DNA of 64,000 nucleotides. It comes from Hyalangium minutum. GTDB lineage: Bacteria; Myxococcota; Myxococcia; Myxococcales; Myxococcaceae. The notes beneath the pieces were generated by a model that worked only from the letters and a program-made list of their open reading frames with translations, had not been told where the DNA came from and searched no databases. Shown here one piece after another: positions 33,462 to 58,500 of the stretch. A program made the position numbers and the translations under genes. Every line of letters starts with the position of its first letter. The stretch's first letter is position 1. The stretch is taken from contig NZ_JMCB01000025.1 in assembly GCF_000737315.1 (NCBI RefSeq), positions 1 to 64,000 on the forward strand. Reading direction: 5' to 3'.

Positions 33462-33623
33462 GGTGAGTCCTCGCCAAAGCAACCTTCGCGCCATGTCGGC
33501 CCGGTCCTATTCCCGACACCCTACCCCCGCAGGCGGTTCCGATTGCTTTTTGTAAGGAATAACCCAGATGGAAGGCGAGAGCGAGACCCCCGGGCTCCTC
33601 TGTCTGGTTGCTAAATGTGGGTT

Positions 33624-33639
33624 TGGCGAGCACTTTGCT
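33624..33639 (+). promoter_or_regulatory. candidate sigma54 -24/-12 promoter upstream of the WYL pair
   Basis: TGGCGAGCACTTTGCT: GG at 33625-6 and GC at 33637-8, the canonical 12-bp spacing, with TTGCT -12 element. Confidence 0.55.
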
Positions 33640-33777
33640 TTACCTGCTTGCGCGTTCAGTCAGGTGTGGATATCCGATCCAGACCCACCTGCCATGCACC
33701 CGCCGTCCAACCGCCCGATGCCCATGCCCGCCTTGACCATGCGTACCCGGATTCGCCATCGTCGCCGACCTCCTGAC

Positions 33778-34797
33778 ATGGAACGTACGGAACGCCTCCT
33801 GGATTTGGTTGCCCTGCTGCTCGACGCCCGCGAGCCCATCTCGTGGGCGGAGCTGCGTGAGCACTTCCCCTCCGACTACGGAGGCATCTCGGACGATGCC
33901 GCTGAGCGCAAGTTCGAGCGCGACAAGGCGGAGCTGCTCGAGCTGGGCCTGCCGCTCACCTATATCCAGGGCGACGACGACCGGAAGGACGGCTACATCG
34001 TCGACCGGAGCGCGTACTACCTGCCGGAGGCGAACCTCACCAAGGAGGAGCTCGCGGTGCTCTACGCCGCAGGTAGCGCCGCGCTGGCCTCGGGAGCCTT
34101 CCCAGGACGTGATGACCTGGCGCACGCGCTGCGCAAGATTGGCTTCTTTGCCGGAGATGCGCTGCCTTCACCTCGCGTGCGCATGGAGGTGGGCTCGGCG
34201 CAGAGCGATCCGGAGCTGTCCGCCCGCCTGGAGCAGCTCTGGGAGGCATGTGCCACGCACAAGTGGGTGCAGATCGCCTATGGCTCGCCCAAGCGCGCGG
34301 AGGTGACGGACCGCAAGGTGGACCCGTACGGCCTGGCGCTGCGCCGGGGCGTGTGGACGCTCGTGGGCTACTGCCACCTGCGCCAGGGCCTGCGCTCCTT
34401 CCACGTGCACCGCATCCGCGAGCTGAAGGTGAACACCGCCCGCCCGCGCACGCCGGACTTCGAGGTGCCCGCGAACTTCTCGCTGGACTCCTATGTGGCG
34501 TACTACCCGTGGCAGCACCGCTTCCACGAGCCCATGGAGGTGACGCTGCTGCTGCGAGGAGACGCGGCCCAGCGCGCCGCCAGCCTCTTCCCGGGTGCCA
34601 CGGTGGAGCCGGCCGAGGACCGCGTCCGGGCCCGCCTGAGTGTGACGTACCTGGAGGGCCTGCTGCGCTTCTGCCTGGCGCTGGGGCCCGAGTGCCGCGT
34701 GGAGTCCCCCGAGCCCGCTGTCGCCCGTGTCCGGGAGATGGGCGCGCGCATCCTCGAGCGCCACGCGGTGGCCGAGGAGAGGAAGGTGAGCGCATGA
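33778..34797 (+). CDS. PafB-like HTH-WYL-WCX transcriptional regulator
   Basis: RKFERDKAELLELGLPL (PafB-type wHTH); VDPYGL...WTLVGYCHLRQGLRSFHVHRI (WYL). Confidence 0.88.
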   Translation: MERTERLLDLVALLLDAREPISWAELREHFPSDYGGISDDAAERKFERDKAELLELGLPLTYIQGDDDRKDGYIVDRSAYYLPEANLTKEELAVLYAAGSAALASGAFPGRDDLAHALRKIGFFAGDALPSPRVRMEVGSAQSDPELSARLEQLWEACATHKWVQIAYGSPKRAEVTDRKVDPYGLALRRGVWTLVGYCHLRQGLRSFHVHRIRELKVNTARPRTPDFEVPANFSLDSYVAYYPWQHRFHEPMEVTLLLRGDAAQRAASLFPGATVEPAEDRVRARLSVTYLEGLLRFCLALGPECRVESPEPAVARVREMGARILERHAVAEERKVSA

Positions 34798-38760: not shown

Positions 38761-38916
38761 CCTCGCGGAGGGCTGGAAAGTCCCACGATATCAGAGGCTT
38801 GGGGCCCGAAAAGGGCCTTGTCCGGCCTTTGACCGAGTGCGTAGGAACTCTTTGCAAGCCGCCCTGTGCAGGCTTACAAGACCGCCGACTTCGGACGGGA
38901 AGGACGGCGAACGCAC

Positions 38917-41649
<2,733 letters not shown>

Positions 41650-41675
41650 CGCGAAGCATCATCTGAGTCACAGCT

Positions 41676-41706
41676 GGCCCGGTGTTCCCTCGAGGATCAC
41701 CGGGCC
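41676..41706. terminator. hairpin between convergent acnA and the TIGR02270 gene
   Basis: GGCCCGGTG (41676-41684) pairs with CACCGGGCC (41698-41706). Confidence 0.6.
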
Positions 41707-41721
41707 GTTGTGTTTCTGGAG

Positions 41722-43035
41722 CTACCTGCGGAAGGGGCGCGAGCCGCGGTGGTCTTCCCACCACTGCTGCCACTGATCGATGGCGGCGCGTTGACGGCGG
41801 ATGGGCCAGTCAGGCTCGAAGCCAATGGCCTGCTGGGAGTGGATGCGGAGTTCCTGAGCGGCGCGCTCGCGGACGTCGAAGGGGCTGTGAGGGTCGGCAA
41901 GCTCCTCGACACAGATGCCGAGGGTCAGCGGCTTGCCGCGCCGGAAGCGCTTGGCGCCAGAGAAGCGGGGAGCGTGACCGTCCCACCATTGCGTCCAGGT
42001 GATGGCGTCCGTAGAGGGGAGACGGATCACGCGGCCAGGCTCCGGTCCATCCGCGCCTTCCTCCAGGGCTCGGGCGGTCACGTAGAGGTTGGCGCCTGTC
42101 ATGAGGTTGAGCGCGGTGCCAGCCGCCAGCCGGACTTCGAGCGCATCCGAGGCGAGGTGCTCGATGAGGAAGGGGACGGAGGAGGGGACCCCCAGGATGC
42201 CGAGCGCCGCGATGGCTCGGGGGGCCAGCTTCGGGTGGGCGCAGAGCTTCTGAAGGAGGGGGAGGTCCCCCTCTTCCCCCGCCATGGCGAGTAAGCGGGG
42301 GAACCCGCCGGGCAGGTCGCCACCGGCTTGGCAGGCCTGGCGGCAGTGCTTCAGCGCACGGGGAGAGCCCAGGCAGAGGGCTGCGAAAGCCAGAGATTCC
42401 CACTCCGAGACAGGAACGAACTGGAGCAGGTTCTCAATGGTTGTGACTGCGGGCCGGTAGCCGAGCCGGGCCAGCGCCATGACCGCGGCACTGCGCACCT
42501 CCAGCGAGGCATCCTCAAGCAGGGGGAGAAGCCGCTCGGCAGTGCCTTCATTGCGGCGCCCCAGGATGCGGGCTGCGGTGGCGCGCACCTCGGAGCGCGG
42601 GGAGGCGAGCAGACCGGCCACGCGCTCAGCAATTCGAGGATGCTCGGAGAGCACGAGTACCTCCTCCCAAACATGGAGCAAGTCCGCGGCAGTCTCTTCC
42701 ACCGTGTCTAGCGCCTCGCTCAGTCCATCGGTTCCGTCCTTCTGCTGGAAGGAAATGATGGCGTAAGCTCCCGCAGTGACCTGGGACTCGTCGCCACCCG
42801 CCATGGCTTCCCGCGCTAGCTCAAGAGCAAGAGTGCCTCCCACACGCATTGCATCGACATGTGCTTCAATCCGGTCATCTAGATCGCCGAGCTTGGTCCA
42901 GGGGGAGTCGGGGGCATGCGCACATCGCTTTCGTTGGCCAAGCAGAAACTCAATCTCGGAGAGATGCTCCTCATGAAATGCGAGGAGGAACTTCGCGAGT
43001 CCTGGGTGCTGTGAAAGAGAGGGAAGTGCTTTCAT
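41722..43035 (-). CDS. TIGR02270 family HEAT-repeat protein (T6SS vgrG-cluster accessory); possible TTG start at 43083
   Basis: EEHLSEIEFLLGQR...LDDRIEAHVDAM N-terminus; HEAT-like repeats; C-terminal RFRRGKP...ERAAQELRI. Confidence 0.8.
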   Translation of the reverse strand: MKALPSLSQHPGLAKFLLAFHEEHLSEIEFLLGQRKRCAHAPDSPWTKLGDLDDRIEAHVDAMRVGGTLALELAREAMAGGDESQVTAGAYAIISFQQKDGTDGLSEALDTVEETAADLLHVWEEVLVLSEHPRIAERVAGLLASPRSEVRATAARILGRRNEGTAERLLPLLEDASLEVRSAAVMALARLGYRPAVTTIENLLQFVPVSEWESLAFAALCLGSPRALKHCRQACQAGGDLPGGFPRLLAMAGEEGDLPLLQKLCAHPKLAPRAIAALGILGVPSSVPFLIEHLASDALEVRLAAGTALNLMTGANLYVTARALEEGADGPEPGRVIRLPSTDAITWTQWWDGHAPRFSGAKRFRRGKPLTLGICVEELADPHSPFDVRERAAQELRIHSQQAIGFEPDWPIRRQRAAIDQWQQWWEDHRGSRPFRR

Positions 43036-43122
43036 GTCAGGTGAGTTGATGACACATGCGAGCTTTGTACGCACTCCCCTCAACCTTCTGCGAAGGCTTC
43101 GGGATCAACGGGAGCACTCACC

Positions 43123-44157
43123 ATGACAGGGGAGGTTGTCCTAGGGCTAGGCCTTTGTACCCCCGTGGGAATATCGGCGCAGATGTCGCTCGCATCCATG
43201 CGGGCAGGGATCTTACGCTTCGTGGAAACAGAGGTGGAAGACGGCTTCGACGAACCCGTACGGGCCTCGCGACTTGAGCTCTTGGAGACGTCTCTGACAC
43301 GTACCGAGCGAATGATCCTCCTTGGGCGAGAGGCACTCGCGGAGGTGAGGCATCTGTTCGCGGGAGCACAGGCGAAGCCAATTCCTCTGTATCTGGGAAT
43401 ACCGGAGCCTGGGATAGGCGCAGCGGTAGAGCGAGAACCCCTGCTGGCCGCGTTGCAGGAGGTGGCAGGGGAGCAAGTCAGGTTCATGGAAGTACAAGAA
43501 GGAGGTCGTGCTGCATTCTTCGAGGCGTTGGTTGCTGCACGGGAAGACCTGCGGTCAGGTAGGGCCGGCCATGTGGCGCTGGTGGGGGCAGTGGATTCGC
43601 TATGCGATAGAGTTTCGCTGAACGCACTAGCGGAGGCGAGAGTGCATCTCGGGCCTGAAAATCCGGATGGCCGGATCCCAGGTGAGGCAGCCGGATTTGT
43701 CGTTGTCGCCCGTCCGGGCGGTCCAAAAGCGGTGAGTCGTCAAGCGTTGGGAGTGGTTTTAGGCGCCGAACTGGCGATGGAACCCCTGCCCTTCAGCTGT
43801 CAGGGGCCAAGCCAAGCGGACGGACTGACTAGGTTATTCCGGAACTTGAGCCGAGACCCGGTAGCAGGAGCACGACGCATGGACGCAGTCCTGGCCTGTC
43901 AACCCGGAGAGTCATTCTGGTCCACGGAGTTTTCGAGAGCTTACCTTCGAAACGCGGCATGGATGCCTGAGCCGCTGCGATGGAGGTCTGCAGGAGAGTT
44001 CCTTGGCGATGCGGGAGCAGGGGCGGGTCCTGTCATGTTAGGCGCAGCACTCTCTTGGGCAACTCGACAGGCTGAGCAGTCGCGGACTGTGGTCTATGGG
44101 TGCTCAGATGGAGGACGGGTGGGCGCCTGTGTCGTAGAGACGTTCTCAGCGGGATGA
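43123..44157 (+). CDS. thiolase/beta-ketoacyl synthase-like T6SS adaptor (PRK06147-like)
   Basis: LGLCTPVG...ASMRAGI, GRAAFFEAL, LVGAVDS, IPGEAAGF, GEFLGDAGAGAG; directly upstream of DUF4150 gene. Confidence 0.82.
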   Translation: MTGEVVLGLGLCTPVGISAQMSLASMRAGILRFVETEVEDGFDEPVRASRLELLETSLTRTERMILLGREALAEVRHLFAGAQAKPIPLYLGIPEPGIGAAVEREPLLAALQEVAGEQVRFMEVQEGGRAAFFEALVAAREDLRSGRAGHVALVGAVDSLCDRVSLNALAEARVHLGPENPDGRIPGEAAGFVVVARPGGPKAVSRQALGVVLGAELAMEPLPFSCQGPSQADGLTRLFRNLSRDPVAGARRMDAVLACQPGESFWSTEFSRAYLRNAAWMPEPLRWRSAGEFLGDAGAGAGPVMLGAALSWATRQAEQSRTVVYGCSDGGRVGACVVETFSAG

Positions 44158-44169
44158 AGAGGAGGATCC

Positions 44170-45510
44170 ATGGCAGACGTTTTCGCCAACGGCCGTTCCA
44201 TTCTCCACAAGGGGGATGGCAACACTCACGTCTCGGCACCACCCGATGTTTGCAAAGTGCCGACACCCGGAGGACCTGTTCCTACTCCCTTCGTGAACTC
44301 AGCTCAGGATTCGATGCTCGACAAGGGCAGCCAAACGACGACCATCGAGGGGCACCCGATTGCGCTGGCGGATTCTGAGCTCAGTGTCAGCTCCGGGGAC
44401 GAACCTGGGACGGCTGGAGGCCTCGTGTCCTCCAAGTTCAAGGGGAAGATGGCTTGGAGCGCCGTCAGCACGGACGTCAAGGTCGAAGGCAAGGGAGTAG
44501 CGCGGTTCTTGGATCCCACCCTGCACAACGGCAATACCTTCAACATCTGTTTCATCTCCCGGGGAGGAACCGGGCTGGCGTATGGCGACGATGCGAAGTG
44601 CCCAGCATGCGGGCAGGCTGGACGGAAGCATCGAGTACTCGAGACGCCTCTGGCCAAAGGGGCTGTCGGAGCCATCTTCCTGGAGCTCGACAAGCGCCTC
44701 AAAGAACAGAAACCTTTGATCGAACAACACCGCAAGTTGCGAGCAAAGCGCAAGGCGCTGACAGTCAAGTCAGAGAGAGAAGCCAACGCGGCGTCGTTGT
44801 CTCTAAAGCCAAAAGAAATGCAAAAGCAGCAGTTGATGCTGCTTCGTGAGCAAGCCATCGCGCAGAAGTTGATCGCGAAGCTCCAAGAGATTGGTCCTCA
44901 GATTCATAAGATTGACGGTGAACTCAAGCCTGAGTACGACAAGATAAAGGAGATGAGGCGTAGGTATAAAGCTGAGATAGATAAGATCAGCCAAGAGATG
45001 AATAGGATCAACGAGGAGATTGACCAGAAAAACCCGGTGCTGGACCTCAATGATCAGGAAGGCACATTCGTCGATGGCTACATGGTAGGGGCCTGCATCT
45101 GTAAGTGCGTCGGCAAGGAGCCGAAGATGCTTGCTGCTCGTTCTGGAGCTTCCAATGCGGCGTTCAAGACAGCGGCGTCCGCTGCGGGCTTCGAACCGGT
45201 TGCGGGTTTTAGAATGAGCAGCAACCAGCAGGCGCACATCCAGATGGTGGGGCGTGCCAAATGGGAATGTGCCGCTCCCCAACTACTCTCCTCAGGACGG
45301 GCGGGCGGGCACAATGTGAAGACCATGTCAGAGCGCCTCTATGCGCCGGAGGCACGTCCATCTCCTTCTGTGAGGTACAAACGAACGGATACGAAGGGCA
45401 CGAGGAAGAGAGAGGAGCAGTTCAGCCACGGAGACTCAGTCCCTTCCTGTAAAGAATGCCAGAAACTTATTCCGGAAATGCTTTGCTACAACCGACAGGA
45501 ATGCTCTTGA
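44170..45510 (+). CDS. DUF4150 (PAAR-like) T6SS effector: PAAR-like, Zn ribbon, coiled coil, putative deaminase-fold toxin
   Basis: GGAGG RBS; VFANGRSILHKG...PDVCKVPTPGGPVPTPFVN...GDEPG...DVKVEGKGVAR...HNGN; CPACG; WECAAPQLL...MSE...VPSCKEC. Confidence 0.85.
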   Translation: MADVFANGRSILHKGDGNTHVSAPPDVCKVPTPGGPVPTPFVNSAQDSMLDKGSQTTTIEGHPIALADSELSVSSGDEPGTAGGLVSSKFKGKMAWSAVSTDVKVEGKGVARFLDPTLHNGNTFNICFISRGGTGLAYGDDAKCPACGQAGRKHRVLETPLAKGAVGAIFLELDKRLKEQKPLIEQHRKLRAKRKALTVKSEREANAASLSLKPKEMQKQQLMLLREQAIAQKLIAKLQEIGPQIHKIDGELKPEYDKIKEMRRRYKAEIDKISQEMNRINEEIDQKNPVLDLNDQEGTFVDGYMVGACICKCVGKEPKMLAARSGASNAAFKTAASAAGFEPVAGFRMSSNQQAHIQMVGRAKWECAAPQLLSSGRAGGHNVKTMSERLYAPEARPSPSVRYKRTDTKGTRKREEQFSHGDSVPSCKECQKLIPEMLCYNRQECS

Positions 45511-45513
45511 GTC

Positions 45514-46239
45514 ATGAATAAATTGTTGATGCTCCTCCAGCGCTATGTGCCTGACTATCAAAATCTGATTGAAGGAGTTCATGGGTGGGCATTGGAGGAG
45601 TTGGAGGAGGTCTTGGGACGGCCTCTTCCCGGCTTCTATCGGACCTTTGCCACCTTCATGGGCAAGAGGGCAGGGCCCCTTCTTGAACATGTGCATGGTT
45701 ATGATCCGCTCGAAGTGATGGACTTCTATCAGTTGACCCCTGCGTCATACCTGCCGCCAAAGCGGTTTCTATACGTCTTTGGGGATTCTTCGACGGATGC
45801 CCAGCACTACTGGCTGGATTTGGAGGCCCCATCTGAAGACGAGGATTGCCAAGTGGTGAGGATCCCCTTGGGCAAGGAGGCTTGGAAGACCCGGCTCTCC
45901 CAAGCCTATGTCAGTCTCCAGGAAATGCTTTTCGTGTGGGCAATGAGGTATGTGGGGCTTCCGACCTTTGAATATGACGCAGAATATCTGCTCGACATGG
46001 CCCCACCCGACAGTGAGCAAGAGGTGGAGGGGCTGGCTCATGTCTTTGTGAAGCTTGGTTTTGCTCGACTCTCCTATCCTCGGAGATGCATGCTTTTCGA
46101 GCGGGACGATGCTGGTATTGAATTGTATCGGCATCCCTCTGCTTCTGGGCTTTCTTTCCGGGTAGGCATGCAGGGACGGGAGGAGTTCCGGCGCTTTCAG
46201 GCCATCGTCGAAGACATAAAAGGAATAAAGGCAGTGTAG
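45514..46239 (+). CDS. SMI1/KNR4 (SUKH)-like immunity protein
   Basis: GWALEELEEVLGRPLPGFYRTFATFMG pattern; 3 bp after the effector stop; AT-richer codons. Confidence 0.75.
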   Translation: MNKLLMLLQRYVPDYQNLIEGVHGWALEELEEVLGRPLPGFYRTFATFMGKRAGPLLEHVHGYDPLEVMDFYQLTPASYLPPKRFLYVFGDSSTDAQHYWLDLEAPSEDEDCQVVRIPLGKEAWKTRLSQAYVSLQEMLFVWAMRYVGLPTFEYDAEYLLDMAPPDSEQEVEGLAHVFVKLGFARLSYPRRCMLFERDDAGIELYRHPSASGLSFRVGMQGREEFRRFQAIVEDIKGIKAV

Positions 46240-46285
46240 ACGGCCCGGCAGGTCCTCTATGTGCTGGCGGTCTACAGACTTGAGC

Positions 46286-47326
46286 TCAAAGTGAACCTTC
46301 CCAGGGTTCTAGCTCCCGGACGAGGCTGTACTCGTGCTGGGCCAGCTCTCGGTGGGCGGGAACTGCCGCGCGCCAGATCAGCGTCAGGGTTCGAGCCTCA
46401 GGCTCGAGCAGCACGGCGTCCAAGGCCAACTCCCTGCGGTCCACCCGATGGCGGAACACGGTCTTGGCCAACAATCGATAGCGTGGGAGGGGAAAAGCAA
46501 GCTGCCCATCCGGCGAGAAGCCCGAGAGCACCACCGGCTCTCCTCCCTTCAACCCAGGAGATGCGATGAGTCCTGGTGAAGCTGCATGAAAGAAGTGGGG
46601 ATCAAAGTCACGAGGCCACAGCGGGGCTCGTTGCTCCACCCAGGCCTCGTCATACGTTCCTGCCAGCTGGAGGCGGGGTTGCCAGCTCCGGGCGATAGGG
46701 CCAAAGCCTGCAGGCGCTACGCGATCCGTGGGACTCGAGATCTGCTGGAGGGGATCCTCCAGGTTCGGTAGGGGCTGCTCGACCGCCTCCTTTACAGAGC
46801 CATACAGGCCCATTCCCACAGGGTTTCTTGGCTCGTATGCGAGAGGCTCCTTGCCCGTGGCTGCGGCTACTCCGCCGAAGCTGCGCTCGTAGCGCAGCGG
46901 CATGGACTCGAACGGCCTGGGCGCCGAGGCCTTCAGCCCCAATGCGCCCCGGTACCACACCCGTGTCCCGAAGACGCGGACCCCCTTCTGGCATGCCCCT
47001 ACCTTCACGGCCGCCAGCAATTCCGGCACCGGCTTGCCTCCAGGCGCCCATGCATGACCCGAGACGTAGATGTCCGTTCCTGGCCGGATATAGGCCGTCT
47101 GTCCCTCGTAGCGCAGGCTCGAGGCACCAGGCTCGCCCCAGTAGACGTCCTCCATCACGGGCGGGCGTTGCTCCTCGCTCGGCTTGGGCGGATTTTGAGA
47201 GGGCCGGCCTGCGGGAGGTAACTCGAACCGGCCAGCAACGCAGATGAGCAGCAGCTCCTCGCCCTCCTTGTTCATCGAGGGCAGGTCCACAGCCTTGAAG
47301 CGGGTGAGGTTCTCGAGGTTCGGCAT
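46286..47326 (-). CDS. DUF2169 family T6SS adaptor
   Basis: DVYWGEPGASSLRY...PGTDIYVSGHA, LRYERSFGG, GFGPIARSWQPR...GTYDEAW...PRDFD...FHAA, LDAVLLEP. Confidence 0.92.
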   Translation of the reverse strand: MPNLENLTRFKAVDLPSMNKEGEELLLICVAGRFELPPAGRPSQNPPKPSEEQRPPVMEDVYWGEPGASSLRYEGQTAYIRPGTDIYVSGHAWAPGGKPVPELLAAVKVGACQKGVRVFGTRVWYRGALGLKASAPRPFESMPLRYERSFGGVAAATGKEPLAYEPRNPVGMGLYGSVKEAVEQPLPNLEDPLQQISSPTDRVAPAGFGPIARSWQPRLQLAGTYDEAWVEQRAPLWPRDFDPHFFHAASPGLIASPGLKGGEPVVLSGFSPDGQLAFPLPRYRLLAKTVFRHRVDRRELALDAVLLEPEARTLTLIWRAAVPAHRELAQHEYSLVRELEPWEGSL

Positions 47327-47353
47327 AGGGACTGCGTGTCACCGCCACAGCTT

Positions 47354-49627
47354 TCAGTTCTCGGAGATCTTCGAGGCCTTCAGCACCATGTCCCCAGAGG
47401 CGGTGACTTCGATCTTCCCGCCCTTGATGACCACCTTGCCGTCCTTCTTCACCTGGATGGTCGCGCTGCCCACCTGGAGCGTGAACGAGTCCTCTGCCGC
47501 CAGCACCAGCTCCTTGCCCTGGATGGCGTAGCTCTCCTTGGCCAGCACCTGGTACTTGCCCCCCACGTTGAGCAGGTGGTCCTGATCCACCTTCAGGTTG
47601 CGCTTCTTCTTCACCGTCTCCGATGCGTCCCCGCCCACGCTCAATGTGCGGTTGCCCTTCACCGTTTCGGACTTCTTGGCGCCCACCAGCTCCACCTTCG
47701 CCCCGCCCACCTGCTCGGACTTCAGCCCGCCCACCAGCTCGTTCATCGCCCCGCCCACCGTCACCGCGTAGGCCCCGCCGATGTTCACCGCCTTGGCCAG
47801 GCCGATGTTCTCCGCCGAGGCCAGCGCCACCGACACGCTCTGCGCCCCGCCCACCGTGACGGACTGGTTGCCCCCCACCGATTCCGTGTGGTTGCCCCCC
47901 ACCGTCGTAGAGCGGTTCTTCGTCACGTCCAGGGTCTGGTTGCCCCCAATCACTGAGGAGTCGTCCTTCGTCACCTTCAAGGATTGGTTGCCGTGCACTT
48001 CGCGGCTCCGGTCCTTCTCCACCAGCAGCTTCTCGTTGCCCCCCACCTGCTGGGACTTGTCGTTCTCCACGACGATGTTGAAGTCCTTTTGCGCGTGGAA
48101 GAACACCTCCTCCGAGCCCGCCGCGTCCTCGAAGCGCAGCTCGTTGAAGCCTCCTCCTCCCGGGCTCGAGTTCGAGCGCAGCGTGCTCTTCGTCTTCTCT
48201 CCCGGCAGATCCAGTGGCGGCGGATGGTGGCCGTTGTACACGCTCCCGGTCACCAGCGGCCGATCCGGATCTCCCTCCAGGAACTCCACCACCACCTCCT
48301 GGCCGATGCGCGGCAGGTACAGCGCACCCCAGCCCGGCCCCGCCCACGCCTGGCTCACTCGGATCCAGCACGAGCTTTTGTCGTCTCCCTTGCCCTCCCG
48401 GTCCCAGTGGAACTGCACCTTGATGCGGCCGTGCTCGTCCGTGTGGATCTCTTCTCCCGCTGGACCCACCACCACCGCCGTCTGCGGGCCCGGCAGCCAG
48501 GGCCTCTGTGTCTTCCGCTCCGGCCGAAAGGGCACTGTCTTGCGCAGGCAGGTGAAGTGATTGCGGTACGGCTCGTGCCCGTCTCCCGCGTGGCGCACTT
48601 GCGTGCCTGGCAGCACCTCCGGCTGCGAACCCCGATGCGCCACCGAGAGCACCAGGTATTCGCCGTCGTATGCCCCGGTCGGGTGCTCGGCCAGCTCGAA
48701 CGTGTAGCCCGGGGTCAGCCGTCGGCTGGCGCTCGAGCCTGCCGCCGTCTCCGCCTTGGCTCGTAGTTCCTCCAGACGGATCTTCGAGTAGCTGCGCCCG
48801 GCTCCCACGTCCTCATAGCGGCCCGGGTAGTCGTACACCTCCAAGGCCGCGTCGGCACCATCCGCCGAGGCGTCCGCGCTCAGGTCGCTGCTGGGCCGCA
48901 GGAAGTTGTAGTCCCGCAGCACCACCGCGCCGGGCTGCACCTCCAGCCGGGAGGCGAACTCGTTCACCGCCTCGGCGCCCGCCACCATGAGCCCCTTCTC
49001 GCGGAACACCAGGCGTGACTCGCCGATGAGCGGCTCGTGCACGGAGGGCGCGTCTCCCAGCACCAGCGTGTGGGCACCTTGCTCGTGCTCGAAGAAGTAG
49101 AAGATGCCCTCCTCCTCGAGCAGCCGGGAGATGAAGTCCAGGTTGGACTCGCGGTACTGCACGCAGTACTCGCGCTTGGGGTAGCTCCCGGACAGTGCCA
49201 GCCGGTGCTCCACGCCCGCCTCGCCCAAGAGCTTCTTCACGATGTCCGGCGTGGTCATCTCCTGGAAGATGCGACTGCGGCGCACGTGGCGCTGCGTCCA
49301 CAGCCGTGGCACCACGCGCACCCGGCACCGCTTGCGCTCCGGGCCGCTGCCCTCGTCCCAGCACCGCACGTGGCCGATGAGTCCGTGGATGAAGCGCGCC
49401 GAGCCGTCTCCCAGCTGGATCGTCAGCAGCGCGTCCTGTCCGAGCAGGTCCGCCCCGTTCACCACGATGTCCGGCCCCGGCACCAGGTCGATCTCCGCTT
49501 GGTAGGGTGCCGACAGCGTCTCCTCCACCGTGAAGCCCAGCACGGCCAGCTCCCCGGCCGGGTGGGGACCACATTCGAACTCGAACTCCGCCTGGTTCGC
49601 CGCCAGCGGCGCAGTGGCAATCGCCAT
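47354..49627 (-). CDS. vgrG: type VI secretion spike protein VgrG, no toxin extension
   Basis: EETLSAPY, REYCVQYRESNLDF, GPQTAVVVGP...HTDEHGRIKVQFHWD, WIRVSQAWAG, LPRIGQEVVVEFLEGDPDRP, NELRFED, HAQKD; gp5-like repeats; ends KISEN. Confidence 0.96.
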   Translation of the reverse strand: MAIATAPLAANQAEFEFECGPHPAGELAVLGFTVEETLSAPYQAEIDLVPGPDIVVNGADLLGQDALLTIQLGDGSARFIHGLIGHVRCWDEGSGPERKRCRVRVVPRLWTQRHVRRSRIFQEMTTPDIVKKLLGEAGVEHRLALSGSYPKREYCVQYRESNLDFISRLLEEEGIFYFFEHEQGAHTLVLGDAPSVHEPLIGESRLVFREKGLMVAGAEAVNEFASRLEVQPGAVVLRDYNFLRPSSDLSADASADGADAALEVYDYPGRYEDVGAGRSYSKIRLEELRAKAETAAGSSASRRLTPGYTFELAEHPTGAYDGEYLVLSVAHRGSQPEVLPGTQVRHAGDGHEPYRNHFTCLRKTVPFRPERKTQRPWLPGPQTAVVVGPAGEEIHTDEHGRIKVQFHWDREGKGDDKSSCWIRVSQAWAGPGWGALYLPRIGQEVVVEFLEGDPDRPLVTGSVYNGHHPPPLDLPGEKTKSTLRSNSSPGGGGFNELRFEDAAGSEEVFFHAQKDFNIVVENDKSQQVGGNEKLLVEKDRSREVHGNQSLKVTKDDSSVIGGNQTLDVTKNRSTTVGGNHTESVGGNQSVTVGGAQSVSVALASAENIGLAKAVNIGGAYAVTVGGAMNELVGGLKSEQVGGAKVELVGAKKSETVKGNRTLSVGGDASETVKKKRNLKVDQDHLLNVGGKYQVLAKESYAIQGKELVLAAEDSFTLQVGSATIQVKKDGKVVIKGGKIEVTASGDMVLKASKISEN

Positions 49628-49643
49628 GGTGTGTCTCCTCTGC

Positions 49644-50213
49644 TCAGGCCCCGCGCCGCACCGGGGGAATGTCTTTCTTCAGCTCTCCAGGCCAGCTGCC
49701 TTCCTTCTCGGAGCGGAAGATCTTCCGCCAGGTGCCGTCCTTCGTGAACGCGCCGGGCGGAATCAGCTCGAACGTCTCGTCCGTCTTGGGATGGTGGTAG
49801 ACCCTGACGCCCTCGATGGGCGTATCCGTGTCCCGCGCCCGCTCTACCTCGCCGCGCAGCCAGAGCTCCTCCAGCTTCTTCACCAGCACCGAGTACTCCT
49901 CGGGCGTGGGGGCATCTCCGGGATAGAGCTGCTCGAAGAAGGAGCGCTCGCCGGGGTCCTCCACGCGAGCCCACATCCCTTTGAGCGGAAACTCCGGAGG
50001 AATGTAGCGATAGACGATGTCCGTCTCCTTCTCCCGGTACCACTCCTCGGGCGTGGTGTAGGAGAACAGCTTGCCCACGGGAATGCGCTCGACGGTGCCT
50101 TTCTCCAGCTCCGCCGCCAGCCGCAGCTGGAACTCTTGCACCTCGTCGAGGGCGTTGAACTCCTTGCCAGAGTGCAGCTTGGAGAGGATGGAGCGCTTGG
50201 AAAACAAGCCCAC
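49644..50213 (-). CDS. putative immunity protein for the VgrG-fused toxin, with internal duplication
   Basis: starts 15 bp after the toxin-bearing vgrG stop, AGGAAAGG RBS; two ~65-aa repeats. Confidence 0.7.
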   Translation of the reverse strand: MGLFSKRSILSKLHSGKEFNALDEVQEFQLRLAAELEKGTVERIPVGKLFSYTTPEEWYREKETDIVYRYIPPEFPLKGMWARVEDPGERSFFEQLYPGDAPTPEEYSVLVKKLEELWLRGEVERARDTDTPIEGVRVYHHPKTDETFELIPPGAFTKDGTWRKIFRSEKEGSWPGELKKDIPPVRRGA

Positions 50214-50228
50214 GTGGGTCCGCCTTTC

Positions 50229-52937
50229 CTACAAGAACACCGTCTTGAGGAAGGCACCCGTCGCGGCGCCCCCCTTCTCCAGCACAGTCTTCGGCACATT
50301 GATGAGGATTTGCGTCGCCCCACCCGCGTAGCCCGTACCCTGGCCCGCGACGATGCCCTCGTACACCTTGGTTCCTGCCTTGAGGGTGAAGGAACTCGAC
50401 TGGGAGGCGGCGTTGCCCCACTCGGGGCGCAGCGCCATGCGGATCTTCCCCTCGAGTCCCAAGGGCCGGGAGCCTCCGGTGACCCAGCGGCCCTGGGGGA
50501 AGGCGCCGCCGCCGTGGAGCCGCTCTACCTGCACGTCTTTCGTGAGCACCTTCTCCGTGTACTTGCCATCCTTGAAGGCCTTGGCGTCCTGAGGCGACAG
50601 GGGTCCCTTGTCTCCCTGGTACGTCTTGCCCTCCTTCGCCACCGAGGGATCCAGCACCTCCTGGAAGGACTTGCTCTGGCCGCTGCCGCCGGACTCCTTC
50701 TTGATCTTGCTGCCCTTGAGCTTGAGCTGCGAGCCGTCGACCGTCAGCTCCTTGGCCCAGATCTTCACCGTGCCGGACTTGTCGATGAGCAGTGCCAGCT
50801 CGTCGCCCACCACCACGGCGGCCTCGTCCGCCTTGAACTTCAGCTCCTTCGAGCTGAAGCCTGTCTCCTGCTTCACCTCGGTGAAGGTGTGGCGGCCGGA
50901 CTCGTCTTTGCGATCCTGGCCCGTGTCCTGGAGCAGCTTGCCTTTGACTTCCTCCTCCACCTCGCCGAGCACATCGCTGCCGCGGTTGCCTCCGACCGTC
51001 TCCGACCAGTCGACGCCCACGTCCACCTTCTTCAGTCCGGCGATCTGCTCCAGGCGCGCTCCTCCCACGGCGGTGTTCGACGCCAGCGCCACGTTGATCG
51101 AGTAAGCTGCCCCGATGTTGAGCGCCGCCGCGGCCCCCACGTTGAACGCCACGGCCTGCGTGACGTTCAGGGTGTGGGCCATGCCCACGGTGATGCTCTG
51201 GGAGCCGTCCACTCCCTCGTCGTGGCTCTCCTTGATCCGGGTGTCGCGGTTCCCTGTCACCGTCAGCGTCTGGTTGCCGTCGATGGCGGAGTCATCCTCG
51301 AGCCTCACCGCGAGCGACTGCTGGCCGTGCACCTCGCGAGAGCGATCCTTCTCCACCAGGAGCTGCTCGTTGCCGCGGACGGTCTGCGTCTTGTCGTTGA
51401 GCGTCTCGAGGTTCTCGTCCTTCTGCGCGTGGAGGTAGACCTCTTCCTCTCCCGCCGCGTCCTCGATGCGCACCTCGTTGAAGCCGCCGCCGCCCACGCT
51501 GGAGTCCGTCCGCTGGGTGCTCTTCGTCTTCTCGCCGGGCAGCGCCACCGGCGGCGGGTTGTTCCCGTTGTAGACGGCGCCCACCACCAGCGGCCGGTCC
51601 GGGTTGCCCTCCAGGAACCGGACCACCACCTCCTGTCCCACTCGGGGGATGAAGTTGGCCCCCCAGCCCTCGCCCGCCCAGGCTTGCCCCACGCGCACCC
51701 AGCAGGAGCTCTGTTCGTTGCGCTGTCCCTGCCGGTCCCAGTGGAACTGCACCTTGATGCGTCCGTGCGTGTCGGGCTGAGTCTCCTCGCCCGAGGGCCC
51801 TACCACCGTGGCCGTCTGGATGCCCGCGATGACGGGTGGCCGCGTGGTGCGCCGGGGACGGTAGGGAATGCCCGAGGGCAGTGTGAGGAACTCGTTGCGA
51901 TAGGAGCCCTCTACCGGATGCGCGTCCCCCACCATCTCCTGGCGCTGTCCCTCGTGGCGCACGCGGACCAGCAACAGCTCCCCGTTCAGCTCGTCGTCCG
52001 GGTGCTCCGCCAGTGCGAAGGTGGCTCCCGGCAGCATCCGGTGGCACGTCCCCGCGCACGCCAGCGTCTTCACGCCGAAGCGCTGCTCCTCCAGTCGCAC
52101 CTTGCTCAGCCGCTTGCCCTCGCCCGGCTGCACGTAGTCGCCCGGGTAGTCGTAGATCTCCAGGCCCTGGACTTCCTGCGTCTCGTTGACCTGGGTGGTG
52201 AGGTCCAGCGTGGGGCGCTCGAAGTCGAAGTCCCGGAGCGCCACCTTGTGGGGGAGCAACCGGTGCGCGAGCGCCACCCGAGTGATGTGCTCGCCCACCG
52301 TGGGCGCCTGGCCCGTCTCCGAGCGGAAGAGCAGGGTGGACTCTCCCGCCAGGGGCTCGTGCGCGCTGGCCGAGTCTCCCAGCACCATCACGTGCGAGTC
52401 CGGGCCGTGCTCGAAGAAGAAGAAGAGGCCCTCGGACTCCAGCAGCCGGAGCACGAAGTCCAGGTCTGTCTCCCGGTACTGCACGCAGTACTCGCGCTGG
52501 GGGTAGCTCCCGGACAGTGCCAGCCGGTGCTCCACGTGCCCGGCCTTGAGCACCTGGGCCACGATGTCCGGCACGGAGAGGTTCTGGAAGATGCGGCTGC
52601 GCCTGACATGCCGCAGCTGCCGCAGGGTGGGGGCCATGCGGACGCGGTACTCGGGCCGGCCATGGCGCAGGCCCACGTCCACCACCTCCTCCACCCAGCC
52701 GTGGATGAAGCGCTCGGAGCCCTCTGGGGTTCTCACCGAGAGGGCCGCCTGTGTTCCGAGCAGCTCGTGGGTGTCCAGGGGCTCCAGCGCCGTGGGGAAG
52801 AACTCGACCTGGAAGTCGAACAGCTCGGACAGTGCCTCGTTACCGCTCAGGCGGGTGACGGTGAGGTCCCCCGCCGCGAGGGGTCCTGCCTGGAGCTCGA
52901 AGACCAGCCGATGTTCACGAGCCACTGCTCCCCCCAC
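50229..52937 (-). CDS. vgrG: evolved VgrG with C-terminal TNT/ART-like toxin extension (start 52937 or 52925)
   Basis: full VgrG core (EALSELF, REYCVQYRETDLDF, GRIKVQFHWD, FIPRVGQEV, HAQKD) followed by a ~145-aa extension after SGGSGQSKS. Confidence 0.93.
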   Translation of the reverse strand: MGGAVAREHRLVFELQAGPLAAGDLTVTRLSGNEALSELFDFQVEFFPTALEPLDTHELLGTQAALSVRTPEGSERFIHGWVEEVVDVGLRHGRPEYRVRMAPTLRQLRHVRRSRIFQNLSVPDIVAQVLKAGHVEHRLALSGSYPQREYCVQYRETDLDFVLRLLESEGLFFFFEHGPDSHVMVLGDSASAHEPLAGESTLLFRSETGQAPTVGEHITRVALAHRLLPHKVALRDFDFERPTLDLTTQVNETQEVQGLEIYDYPGDYVQPGEGKRLSKVRLEEQRFGVKTLACAGTCHRMLPGATFALAEHPDDELNGELLLVRVRHEGQRQEMVGDAHPVEGSYRNEFLTLPSGIPYRPRRTTRPPVIAGIQTATVVGPSGEETQPDTHGRIKVQFHWDRQGQRNEQSSCWVRVGQAWAGEGWGANFIPRVGQEVVVRFLEGNPDRPLVVGAVYNGNNPPPVALPGEKTKSTQRTDSSVGGGGFNEVRIEDAAGEEEVYLHAQKDENLETLNDKTQTVRGNEQLLVEKDRSREVHGQQSLAVRLEDDSAIDGNQTLTVTGNRDTRIKESHDEGVDGSQSITVGMAHTLNVTQAVAFNVGAAAALNIGAAYSINVALASNTAVGGARLEQIAGLKKVDVGVDWSETVGGNRGSDVLGEVEEEVKGKLLQDTGQDRKDESGRHTFTEVKQETGFSSKELKFKADEAAVVVGDELALLIDKSGTVKIWAKELTVDGSQLKLKGSKIKKESGGSGQSKSFQEVLDPSVAKEGKTYQGDKGPLSPQDAKAFKDGKYTEKVLTKDVQVERLHGGGAFPQGRWVTGGSRPLGLEGKIRMALRPEWGNAASQSSSFTLKAGTKVYEGIVAGQGTGYAGGATQILINVPKTVLEKGGAATGAFLKTVFL

Positions 52938-52988
52938 GTGCCAGCTTCAACTTCAGCACTGCCCGTCGCGCTGGATATCACACCCAGC

Positions 52989-54389
<1,401 letters not shown>

Positions 54390-54483
54390 GGCGCTCTCCC
54401 TTGCTCCAAACCGGGAGAGCGAGTTAGCCGCGCTCGGGCCGAAAGCCAAGAGCGGTGTTGGGGGAGACGTCACCCCCGGGCGC

Positions 54484-54906
54484 TCAGGCCTCCTTCAGGC
54501 GGGCCCAGGCGGCGCGGTAGCGGGCCAGCCGCTCGGTCTCCTTGGGGCCTACCGTCAGCAGCCGCCGCACGTCCATGTTGTCCTCCAGGTCCGCCAGCTT
54601 CACGCGGCGCGCCAAAGGGTGGGGGCGGACGCGCTCGATGAAGGCCTCGTACGTCTCGCCCTCCCGCTTCGTCAGGCAGTCCAGCGCGCCGAGCACCTCC
54701 TCCGGGTAGCCCAGCTCGCGCAGGCGCTCCAGCGTGTAGGGGGTGTCCTCCACCACGTCGTGGAGGATGGCCGCCATCCGCTCGGCCTCCGTCTCCAGAC
54801 GCATCATCACCCTCAGAGGGTGGAGGATGTAGGTCTGCCCCGCCTTGTCTCGCTGGCCCCGGTGGGCCTCCACGGCGAGGGCGATGGCGTCTTCCAGGGT
54901 GGGCAT
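54484..54906 (-). CDS. small HD-domain protein (RelA/SpoT-hydrolase-like, small alarmone hydrolase type)
   Basis: [32 protein letters not shown]. Confidence 0.85.
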
Positions 54907-55327: not shown

Positions 55328-55537
55328 GACTGTTCCTAACCTAGCCCCTGGCCGGGCGTTGTGCACCGGGGATGGGGCGGCCTTTCGGGGGCGCATGACC
55401 GAGAGGGGTCTGCTTGTCTGACAGGTTTGGGACGGCCTTGCCGGGAAGGCTAGGCTCGCCGCCCGAGCCCGCGCGACGGGGTGCGTCCCAGGCTCTTCTA
55501 TAAGGAGAGGCCCTTGAGTCAGAGCAGAGCCGGGCGC

Positions 55538-58500
55538 ATGCCGTGGGAGATGGTGGATGTGCTCATTCTCACCGCCCTCCAGGCTGAGTACGACGCCGTG
55601 CTGAAGGAAGACGTCGACGCTCTGCCGGGCAGCTCCTGGGAGCGGCGGATGGGGCCGCTGGGCCTGGAAGTCGCGCTTCGCACCTTCCGTGGGCAGGGCG
55701 GCGGGACGCTCCGTGTGGCCGTGACCCGTCTCCTCGAGAAGGTCGGCGTGGCCCCTGCGTATGCCGCGGCTCCGCTCGTGCGCGTCTTTTCGCCTCGGTG
55801 TCTGGCGATCCGTACTGAGGGCTCCGCGCTTTCCGCGCTCGCGTCCCGGCAAGACATTCCCTACCGGCTGGTGATGAAGGGGACGGTGGAGGGAGCCGAC
55901 CTGGTTTGGAGCGCCAAAGTGCCTCCGATGCAGCGCCCCCAGGAACTTGTTCCGAGCAGCACGGGAGACCTGGAGGCGCTTCTCGCCCCTGGTACCCGAG
56001 CGCCTCCCAAAGATGGAGGGCCCGTGGCGCTGTTGGATGCGCGCCATGCGTCCGTGGACTTCTTCGAGCCGATCCACGCGGAGCTGCTGCAGGACCTCCA
56101 GTCCTGGTGCGGCGAGGACGAGCCCGTCAGTGTCCGGCTCTTCCATGGAGCGGCTGGCACCGGCAAGACGCGTCTGTTCATTGAAAGCATCCAGCGGCTG
56201 CGTGGCCAGGGCTGGCGAGCGGGGTTTCTGCACGAGGCGGTGGAGCCGGACCACTTCGAGGAACTGCTGGCTGCGGCCTCCGAGCGGCCCACGCTCGTCG
56301 TCATCGATCGGGCAGAGAGCCTTCCTCGGCTGGGTGCGCTGCTCCTGTCCGTGGCGCACCGTCGCAAAGCAGGAGGCCCGGGACGCTTCCGACTGGCCCT
56401 CATCGCTCGCGAGGCAGGCGGATGGTGGGAGCTGCTTCAGCGGCGCAGCCTCGAGCTGCGGAAGCTCTTGAAGGATCGCTTGCCGACGGAGGTCGCTTCC
56501 ATCGCTCCCTCGCAGCGCGAGGCGGTCTTCGAGCACGCGGCTCAGCGGTTCGCCTCCCTCCTGGGACGGACGCCTCCGGCCTCCTCGGTGGCAATCTCCG
56601 ATCCTCGCTTTGATCGGGTGCTCCCCCTTCACATGGCTGCGTTGGCCGCAGTCCTCGGGAAGCCTTTCACGCCAGAGTCTCTGAGCGAGGCGCTTCTGGG
56701 CGAAGAGGGGGCATTCTGGGGCTCTCGGGTGGAGGGAGGCGAGCGGCCATTCCAAGAGCTGGTCCTGCGTTCCATCGCTGCGTGGATCCTCACGGGCGGT
56801 GCTTCGACCTCGGAGGATGCGCGAGCGCTGCTCCTTCTGCGAAACCTGTACCCAGGGCTCGCTGCGGAAGCTGGGCACTGGGAGCCAGAGCTGCTCGGTG
56901 AGGCGCTGGTGTTGAGGGCGCTGCGTCGAGAAGGAGCGTCGGCGGGGGATTGGTTGAAGCGGATCCTTGAAGGCGCGGACGCGCGAGCGGCTCGCACCGC
57001 CTTCGAGGTGCTCGGGCGTTTGTCCGCAGAGGCCCCTGAGGCTGGGGAGTGGATCGCGGCGCTGCTTGCGGGTGCTGTCAGCGTGCGGGCCACCGCTGCG
57101 CTGGAAGCGGCGAAGGCGATTGGACAGCGCCCCGCTTACGCTGCCTTGGGCCGTGAGCTCGCCAAGGCCCTTGAGCGCGAGGGCACACCCCTGGTGGCGG
57201 AGTTGCTCGAAGCGTCCGGGCTCCCGGAGTTCGTGGCACCCCTGCGCGAGGTCTCCGTCTGGGTCAAGACCACGCTGCTGAACCACCTCCCTCCGGGCGA
57301 GACTCCGCGCGCACGAATCGAACAAGCGAGGTTCCGTGGCAGCTTGGGCTCATTGCTGGGAATGCTCGGGCGGCGCGAGGAGGCGCTGGGCTTCGTGAAG
57401 GAGGCCGTGGAGCACTATCGCCAGCTGGCTGCCGCGCACCCGGAGGTCTTCCGCGTGGACCTTGCCCTGGGACTGACGGACCTGGGCGTCGTGCAGGGCG
57501 AGCTTGGCCAGCGTGAGGAGGCCCTGGCAGCCATGCAAGAGGCGGTGTCGATCCGCCGCACCCTCGCGGAGGAGTCCCCGAGGGAGTTCCTCCCCATCCT
57601 CGCGGTGAACCTGAATGGCCTCGCCAGGGCTCAGAGCGCCCTGGGTCGCAGGGAGGAGGCCCTGGCCTCCATGCAGGAGGCGGTGAGCCACTACCGCGCG
57701 CTCGCCAAGAAGCGCCCGGAGTCCTTCCTCCCCGAGCTGGCCGCGAGCCTCAACAACCTGAGCTCCATGCAGAGCGCCCTGGGCCACAAGGCTGAGTCCC
57801 AGTCCTCCATCCATGAGGCCGTGGGCCACTACCGCACGATCGCCAAAAAGCACCCCGAGCCATACCTCCCCGAGCTGGCTGGCAGTCTGACGAACCTCGC
57901 CATCGTCCAGGGCGAGCTGGGGCAGCGCGAGGAGGCCCTGGCCCTCGCGCAAGAGTCCGTGGCCCTCTTCCGTCAGCTCATGGAGGCCCGCATCGAGGAG
58001 CACCTGCCTCCGTTCGCGACGAGCCTCACCTGCCTCGCGGGCGCTCTGAGCGCGCTGGGCCGCCGGGACGAGGCGCTCTCCTGGATGCTGGAGTCCGTGG
58101 CCATCCGCCGCAAGCTGGCCGAGGAGCGTCCCCAGTCGTTCCTCGCGGATCTCGCCATGAGCCTGGTCAATCTCAGCGTTTTCCAGAACGAGCTGGGCCG
58201 CCGCGAGGAATCCCTCGCCACGGTGAAGGAGGCCGCCGAGCGCTACCGCAAGCTGGCCCAGGCGTACTCGTCAGCGTACCTCCCCGCCCTGGCCGTCTGT
58301 CTGAGCAACCTCGCGGCGGTGCAGAGCTCCCTGGGCCGCAACGCGGAGGCCCTGGCCTCGGTCCAGGAGGCCGTGGAGTATTACCGCCGGCTCGCCAAGG
58401 TGATGCCAGCCATGTTCCTCTCGCAGCTCGCCGCGAGCCTCAACACCCTCGGCAGCGTGCAGAGCGGCCTGGAGCTGTGGACCGAGGCCCTGGCCTCCGT

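Follow-up and report, generated by a model that had tools for sequence, protein, structure and literature searches.

In the myxobacterium Hyalangium minutum, a vgrG island of a type VI secretion system (T6SS) carries a thiolase-like gene, a DUF4150 effector gene and a putative immunity gene on the strand opposite to the surrounding vgrG, DUF2169 and HEAT-repeat genes. The island is located in a stretch of 64,000 nucleotides (nt; NCBI RefSeq assembly GCF_000737315.1, contig NZ_JMCB01000025.1, positions 1 to 64,000 of the forward strand), which is called the window in the following. It is likely that the reversed block represents an old and fixed inverted allele of single origin, belonging to a vgrG island of synteny type A or Tvp class II, and that this allele has been exchanged between lineages by recombination. 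An initial annotation, made from the letters of the window alone, had instead proposed a past or reversible inversion acting as phase variation of a toxin. As the inverted layout is common to at least six lineages, it is better regarded as an old fixed gene-order variant than as an on/off switch.

Gene calls and strands were derived from codon-position GC and from Pfam and NCBIfam profiles, and they confirm the annotated order of minus strand, plus-strand block and minus strand as well as the head-to-head gap of 87 bp to the HEAT/TIGR02270-like gene. The features of this part of the island are (aa, amino acids):

41722-43035, minus strand: HEAT-repeat / TIGR02270-like accessory gene, 437 aa (HEAT_2, E=8e-17; TIGR02270, E=1e-37)
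43036-43122, no strand: left junction, divergent 87-nt gap from HEAT start to thiolase start (from the sequence)
43123-44157, plus strand: thiolase-like PRK06147 / TvpD-type accessory gene, 344 aa (NF004798 PRK06147, E=1e-48)
44170-45510, plus strand: DUF4150 / Tox-PAAR-like (PIPY) effector gene, 446 aa (PF13665, E=1e-29)
45514-46239, plus strand: putative immunity gene, 241 aa, with weak resemblance to SUKH-1 (SMI1_KNR4, E=0.0017, under cut-off)
46240-46285, no strand: right junction, convergent 46-nt gap from immunity stop to DUF2169 stop (from the sequence)
46286-47326, minus strand: DUF2169 (TvpA) chaperone gene, intact, ending ...RELEPWEGSL* (PF09937, E=5e-95, above gathering score)
47354-49627, minus strand: vgrG, 757 aa, cassette spike protein (TIGR03361, E=3e-195)

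The thiolase-like gene sits directly 5' of the effector gene, and its NF004798 match is near full-length (profile 7-342/349) but reaches 166 bits against a cut-off of 342; the TIGR02270 match of the HEAT gene (profile 6-409/410) reaches 129.7 bits and is likewise below its cut-off of 206.8. Across syntenic relatives the aa identity is 89-95% for VgrG and 73-80% for the HEAT protein, and vgrG lies directly 5' of DUF2169 with a spacing of 27 nt (47327-47353). The HEAT ATG at 43035, which defines the head-to-head gap, is kept in the relatives as well.

Two layouts of the island at the same locus

Relatives were retrieved via HEAT homologues (68-86% identical), which are named Hyalangium or stem from soil metagenomes, and since all of the retrieved contigs carry the aconitase-PLD-FHA-WYL flank they represent the same locus. 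These sister genomes, to which the initial annotation had pointed, share the layout of the window in one part of the clade. Five syntenic relatives (L006, L007, L012, L013, L014) are co-directional, with the gene order vgrG-(DUF6484)-DUF2169-thiolase (355 aa)-DUF4150-immunity-HEAT and an ATGA overlap of DUF2169 and the thiolase gene, and co-directional homologous cassettes are also found in Archangium gephyra and other Myxococcales. The inverted layout is present in L008, in L009/L010/L011 (one organism, three assemblies), in L016-L020 (one organism, five runs), in L021 and in L022, which together with the window makes six lineages. All genes that are fully contained in the inverted loci are intact, the breakpoints coincide at all of these loci when measured from the DUF2169 stop and from the HEAT start, and the alignment of the window with L009 runs unbroken from the effector N-domain through the thiolase, the divergent gap and HEAT into aconitase. 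Among the inverted lineages the effector C-domain is 37-55% and the immunity protein 53-64% identical to that of the window, the latter range being found for the 241-aa ORF (open reading frame) against the ORF at the same position in L004, L008, L009, L016 and L021. An assembly artefact as the source of the inversion has practically no probability left, because the same layout recurs in independent assemblies from NCBI, ENA, JGI and Logan and the junctions are free of repeats that could mislead an assembler.

The two orientations do not carry the same cassette. Nucleotide homology of the window to L006 and L007 amounts to 80-86%, ends at 46299, which is 13 nt before the DUF2169 stop, and resumes inside the HEAT gene at 43011 (L006) and 42990 (L007); in between, only PAAR-like N-domain matches on the opposite strand are left. 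Homology to donor-type cassettes, in turn, begins at 43110. With the 355-aa type found in the co-directional syntenic relatives, the window thiolase (344 aa) shares only 43-49% identity. The values are 64-69% for the 345-aa type carried by the inverted relatives and 68% for the one in an A. gephyra cassette, which is co-directional and located at an unrelated locus. Since the co-directional relatives carry a non-orthologous cassette and different toxins, the two layouts do not represent a single DNA segment in alternative states. The historical inversion of the initial annotation thus stands insofar as a layout derived from the canonical co-directional order is supported by the five co-directional syntenic relatives, whereas a flip of the same segment does not agree with non-orthologous cassettes.

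In total 85 thiolase homologues were found, the best of which are 64-69% identical to the window, and a profile search of genome contigs with the thiolase alignment yielded at least three loci, one of them useful. In neighbour-joining trees, all six inverted thiolases fall into one clade, and none outside this clade is inverted. Its sister clade (A. gephyra and P0001) is co-directional with a 4-nt overlap, so that among the sampled loci orientation tracks cassette type without exception. The thiolase of Hyalangium gracile (P0051) is nearest to the inverted clade (74% identity to L009) and shares a contig of 572,755 bp with the HEAT homologue P0107; judged from sequence, this cultured species probably carries the inverted allele.

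DUF2169 tails, junctions and the 7-bp repeat

The initial annotation had based its inversion on a 7-bp inverted repeat bracketing the block, where re-inversion would end DUF2169 as ...VREHSP* with an ATGA overlap onto the thiolase start. The two arms are:

43109-43115, plus strand: left 7-mer arm CGGGAGC, overlapping the thiolase ribosome-binding site (RBS), at chance level
46312-46318, plus strand: right 7-mer arm GCTCCCG, within the R-E-L codons of DUF2169 and 5' of its conserved LEPWE tail

Both the positions of the repeat and its partial coincidence with an RBS hold true, and the window does contain a ...REHSP* frame that shares an ATGA with the thiolase start. A crossover at these sites, however, is not compatible with the DUF2169 tails. 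The co-directional relatives end with ...RELE(P/H/S)WEELS(S/P/A)*, WEELPK* or WEGPLP*, the inverted loci with WEGSL* (window), WETLPV* or WEEFPL*, so the orthologues are of the RELEPWE type and not of the REHSP type, and the native ...RELEPWE with a tail of 3-4 aa is kept in both layouts. The tail of the window (WEGSL*) resembles the WEGPLP* of L013, its closest relative. These native tails refute the proposed crossover, since recombination between the two 7-mers would cost DUF2169 its conserved LEPWE, and the right breakpoint must therefore be placed at or just after the DUF2169 stop codon. Moreover, the longest exact inverted repeat between the 120-nt junction windows is 7 nt, while shuffled sequences give a mean of 6.7 and reach at least 7 in 54% of cases. 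The 7-mer pair was not found at the five other inverted loci examined, and a search for longer or imperfect repeats returned 332 inverted pairs in 6 kb, which is chance level and of which none brackets the block. The 7-bp repeat is coincidental.

The other side of the block offers a hint on how it came to lie there. About 15-20 nt 5' of the thiolase ATG resemble the DUF2169 3' end and RBS of donor-type cassettes (GGGAGCACTCACCATGA in the window, GGGAGGATGCACCATGA in A. gephyra), and a search 5' of the thiolase for more of such a donor DUF2169 end found the similarity confined to these ~15-20 nt of RBS and spacer. Because a short end/RBS segment of the GGGAG type is copied in both DUF2169 and the block, a reversed insertion or a staggered-break inversion fits better than a clean two-break event. 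The segment is too short to choose between an inserted cassette, foreign or paralogous and placed in reverse, and a staggered-break inversion; either would fit. A recent private inversion of the resident cassette by two breaks at or near the 7-bp repeat is therefore scarcely credible. It would explain that flipping 43.1-46.3 kb gives back the canonical order and that the ATGA and the ...SP* frame remain 5' of the thiolase start, but a conservative two-break inversion would not duplicate the end/RBS segment, the closest relatives carry a cassette that is no orthologue of the one in the window, and five other lineages share the layout, which refutes a private event.

Similar objections apply to a reversible element, in which a site-specific recombinase flips the block between a coupled ON and an uncoupled OFF state and so causes phase variation of the toxin. 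That both orientations of such cassettes occur at the same locus in related genomes speaks for a switch at first sight, as does the repeat that brackets the block. However, the orientations carry non-orthologous cassettes (thiolases of 355 versus 344-345 aa, with different toxins), the repeat is neither above chance nor conserved, and the proposed crossover would cost DUF2169 its tail. The inverted state persists although effector and immunity protein have diverged to 37-64% identity, and all 11 assemblies that bear at least one junction are inverted (L008, L009-L011, L016-L020, L021, L022; NCBI, ENA, JGI and Logan sources). In the large ORFs of the 64-kb window, Pfam gave no domain of a recombinase, integrase or transposase, in accordance with the initial annotation, which had likewise seen no recombinase there; one encoded farther away is possible. 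With six diverged lineages sharing the layout, a phase-variable toxin switch is very improbable.

The junctions themselves vary between the inverted loci, with convergent gaps of 1-66 nt (46 nt in the window) and divergent gaps of 83-121 nt (87 in the window). A sigma-54-like pattern is absent from five divergent gaps, an Rfam search of 41000-53500 gave no match, and folding of both junctions on both strands was no better than that of shuffled sequences (right-junction hairpin, z=-1.2). Opposite the effector gene, the minus strand has five hairpins that resemble terminators and are accompanied by T-runs (44730-44845, 45459-45475), where 2.6 +/- 1.6 are expected; they are on the path of any vgrG-DUF2169 read-through and may reflect chance in a lower-GC stretch.

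History and possible function of the reversed cassette

A phylogeny of the flanks groups the window with L013 and L012, both of which are co-directional, while L007 and L006 form a second group, the inverted L008 is intermediate and the inverted L009 more distant. Since the closest flank relatives of the window are co-directional and the distant L009 is inverted, the layout is patchily distributed and at odds with the flank phylogeny. The GC content of the inverted block is 53-61% versus ~69% around it, with a dip at ~42.5-46.5 kb, and sliding identity between the window and L013 is 62-71% in the 5' third of HEAT versus 82-90% in the remaining gene, whereas L013 and L012 are 84-86% identical in the HEAT 5' part. 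The resulting tract can be described as follows:

~42600-46650, no strand: variable lower-GC tract of HEAT 5' third, block and DUF2169 3' part, likely a recombination tract (GC 0.53-0.62 versus ~0.69)

In every lineage pair, the HEAT 5' part (42600-43035) and the DUF2169 3' part (46286-46650) evolve much faster than the remainders of these genes, so the variable unit is wider than the three genes of the block. The bordering parts either travel with the cassette in recombination or co-evolve with the effector. The alleles would probably be exchanged through homologous recombination, with DUF2169 and HEAT as the sites of crossover.

From these data the following course can be envisaged. In one Hyalangium-like lineage, a cassette of the "345-aa thiolase" type would have come to lie reversed between the DUF2169 stop and the HEAT start and would have taken the place of the resident co-directional cassette. 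This inverted allele presumably became fixed, was then inherited and probably moved between lineages via homologous recombination inside DUF2169 and HEAT, and its effector toxin domain and immunity gene have diverged strongly. The block at 43123-46239 is best read as the chaperone-effector-immunity unit of the island, with the PRK06147/TvpD-like gene, the DUF4150/PIPY effector gene and the SUKH-like immunity gene. According to three papers (PMC11883445, PMC13373197, PMC7714669), DUF2169/TvpA acts as the chaperone that brings the DUF4150/PIPY domain to VgrG, a second chaperone is predicted in PRK06147/TvpD, and in Proteus mirabilis every gene of such a cluster was needed for killing. In the published class II model TvpC serves a pre-complex (PMC13373197). 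In the window, the block would form a separate transcription unit whose promoter lies within or close to the 87-bp gap shared with HEAT, presumably a bidirectional one, and HEAT would need a promoter of its own or depend on read-through. The vgrG-DUF2169 transcript would run towards the immunity gene, the two stop codons being 46 nt apart. The proteins of the block would still load onto the VgrG encoded on the opposite strand (47354-49627) with the help of DUF2169, the T6SS would deliver the effector and, by analogy, the 241-aa protein is expected to protect kin cells. The loss of operon and translational (ATGA) coupling would thus be tolerated.

Several observations weigh against an old inverted allele of single origin. 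Since the bootstrap of the inverted clade is only 56%, a single origin is favoured and not proven. The proteins of the inverted cassettes are no closer to one another (64-69% for the thiolase) than to those of the co-directional A. gephyra cassette (68%), and with such equal distances a repeated replacement of cassettes is possible. As the HEAT 5' part is fast-evolving in all pairs, the recombination tract rests mainly on the contrast between the window, L013 and L012. The count of 11 inverted assemblies is one of assemblies, which collapse minority states, and rare flipping would be below that resolution. Furthermore, a sigma-70 scan of 42600-46700 gave 0 sites, leaving the 87-bp gap without a recognised promoter, and the five divergent gaps, when aligned, have no conserved motif and are poorly kept between lineages.

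Some of these points would fit with several origins of the layout, in which the site between DUF2169 and HEAT received a reversed cassette of the 345-aa type on separate occasions, each time a different one, and the patchy occurrence on the flank phylogeny and the differing junction gaps point in the same direction. This is nevertheless unlikely, because all six members of the clade and none outside of it are inverted, the breakpoints relative to the DUF2169 stop and HEAT start are the same in all of them, and there is no known mechanism for a repeated reverse insertion at the same two points. There is a somewhat better, though still small, chance that two long-lived alleles exist side by side in Hyalangium-like populations and that the inverted one gives the effector-immunity pair a regulation of its own. 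Such regulation might consist in expression independent of the spike operon or in a damping by convergent (antisense) transcription of vgrG-DUF2169, with stop codons 1-66 nt apart.

If the inverted allele is indeed old and of single origin, a T6SS chaperone-effector-immunity unit can leave the vgrG operon, reverse and stay intact over long periods. Because the reversed unit is intact, operon linkage and the translational overlap of DUF2169 and TvpD appear to be dispensable. The locus has two cassette alleles of opposite orientation, independent of the flank phylogeny, which adds a mode of effector-cassette turnover. What emerges from the analysis is an uncharacterised myxobacterial toxin domain and no new regulatory switch.

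This toxin domain is located at the C-terminus of the effector. In the AlphaFold2 model an N-terminal spike-tip domain is followed by a confident long coiled-coil hairpin (aa 160-286, ~125 aa) and by a Cys/His-rich domain of ~160 aa (aa 287-446; 45028-45510) with an alpha/beta fold of moderate confidence. The C-domain has invariant Cys, His and Glu residues and the motifs GYMVGACICKC, WECAAP, GH and SVPSCxxC...PEMLC, and its homologues are myxobacterial DUF4150 proteins only. A Pfam search with relaxed E-value, a sequence search of the PDB and two Foldseek searches with two AlphaFold2 models gave no match for the identity of the toxin, the full-length Foldseek search being dominated by coiled-coil matches. 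As far as its sequence allows to say, the domain may represent an undescribed toxin family. The H/E/C motifs recall those of deaminases, but this assignment was rejected because their spacing does not agree and there is no fold match.

The first part of the island consists of two further genes:

50229-52946, minus strand: vgrG with a C-terminal extension of ~300 aa, the island's first gene (Phage_GPD, Phage_base_V, Gp5_trimer_C; TIGR03361, E=7e-184)
49644-50228, minus strand: 194-aa ORF 3' of the extended vgrG, candidate immunity or accessory gene (GC at third codon positions 0.87)

The initial annotation had called this pair a vgrG-toxin with its immunity gene. Both genes are present, but the extension has no family match in Pfam and NCBIfam, including Pfam at a relaxed E-value, and the 194-aa ORF matches neither Pfam nor NCBIfam, so that "toxin" and "immunity" are putative labels here. 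The 194-aa ORF is 74-87% identical (aa) in L007, L008 and L009, and in L006 the module of vgrG extension and 194-aa ORF is replaced by a PG_binding_1 protein and a 244-aa ORF. The vgrG extension (50229-51146) together with the 194-aa ORF may be a second variable effector slot of the island. A DUF6484 (TvpC) OB-fold gene between vgrG and DUF2169 was not found, as tblastn with the DUF6484 proteins of L007 and L009 matches only the beta-prism of vgrG. DUF6484/TvpC is present in L007 and L009 and absent from the window, L008, L012 and L013; hence its presence varies independently of cassette orientation. The island is bordered by aconitase (38866-41649, plus strand) on one side and on the other by a tRNA synthetase of class II (Asp/Lys/Asn type; 52989-54494, minus strand). 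A WYL-domain regulator gene pair is located on the aconitase side (33556-34797; also at sister loci), and a 1217-aa STAND-NTPase/TPR protein is encoded at 55454-59107, just past the tRNA-synthetase and HD-domain genes bordering the island.

Comparison with known systems

Invertons of the fimS or Hin type and shufflons resemble the locus superficially, in that a segment is oppositely oriented in different genomes. Unlike in invertons, no repeat above chance and no recombinase was found in the window, the assemblies gave no evidence of a dual orientation of the same DNA, and the orientation is stable over deep divergence. The proper counterpart is the vgrG1b cluster of Pseudomonas aeruginosa (PA0095-PA0101, Tse7/Tsi7), which is assigned to DUF2169 synteny type A by Sachar et al. 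(2025, PMC11883445) and to Tvp class II by Monlezun et al. (2026, PMC13373197); the pef operon of P. mirabilis (PMC5714391) is of the same kind. Like the vgrG1b cluster, the window has VgrG, DUF2169/TvpA, PRK06147/TvpD, a DUF4150/PIPY effector with C-terminal toxin, an immunity gene and a HEAT/armadillo gene, although for PRK06147 and TIGR02270 the curated cut-offs are missed by matches that span the full length. The same working is expected as well, with TvpA and TvpD as chaperones that place the PIPY domain on the tip of VgrG. In contrast to the vgrG1b cluster, the window has no DUF6484/TvpC gene, and its toxin domain belongs to a Cys/His-rich uncharacterised family and not to Tox-GHH2. Another difference is the reversed strand of the TvpD-effector-immunity unit, which meets DUF2169 tail to tail and HEAT head to head, and therefore operon and translational coupling are lost.

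With regard to the turnover of cassettes, the closest parallel is found in the agrobacterial vgrG loci, for which PMC8546570 describes recombinational diversification downstream of the adaptor gene. Both have a conserved vgrG-adaptor backbone with swapped effector-immunity units, a variable tract of lower GC and a cassette distribution that is patchy relative to the flank phylogeny. Reversed cassettes did not come up among the targeted terms searched in PMC8546570, and the window differs from the agrobacterial loci in that one allele class has been reversed and kept so.

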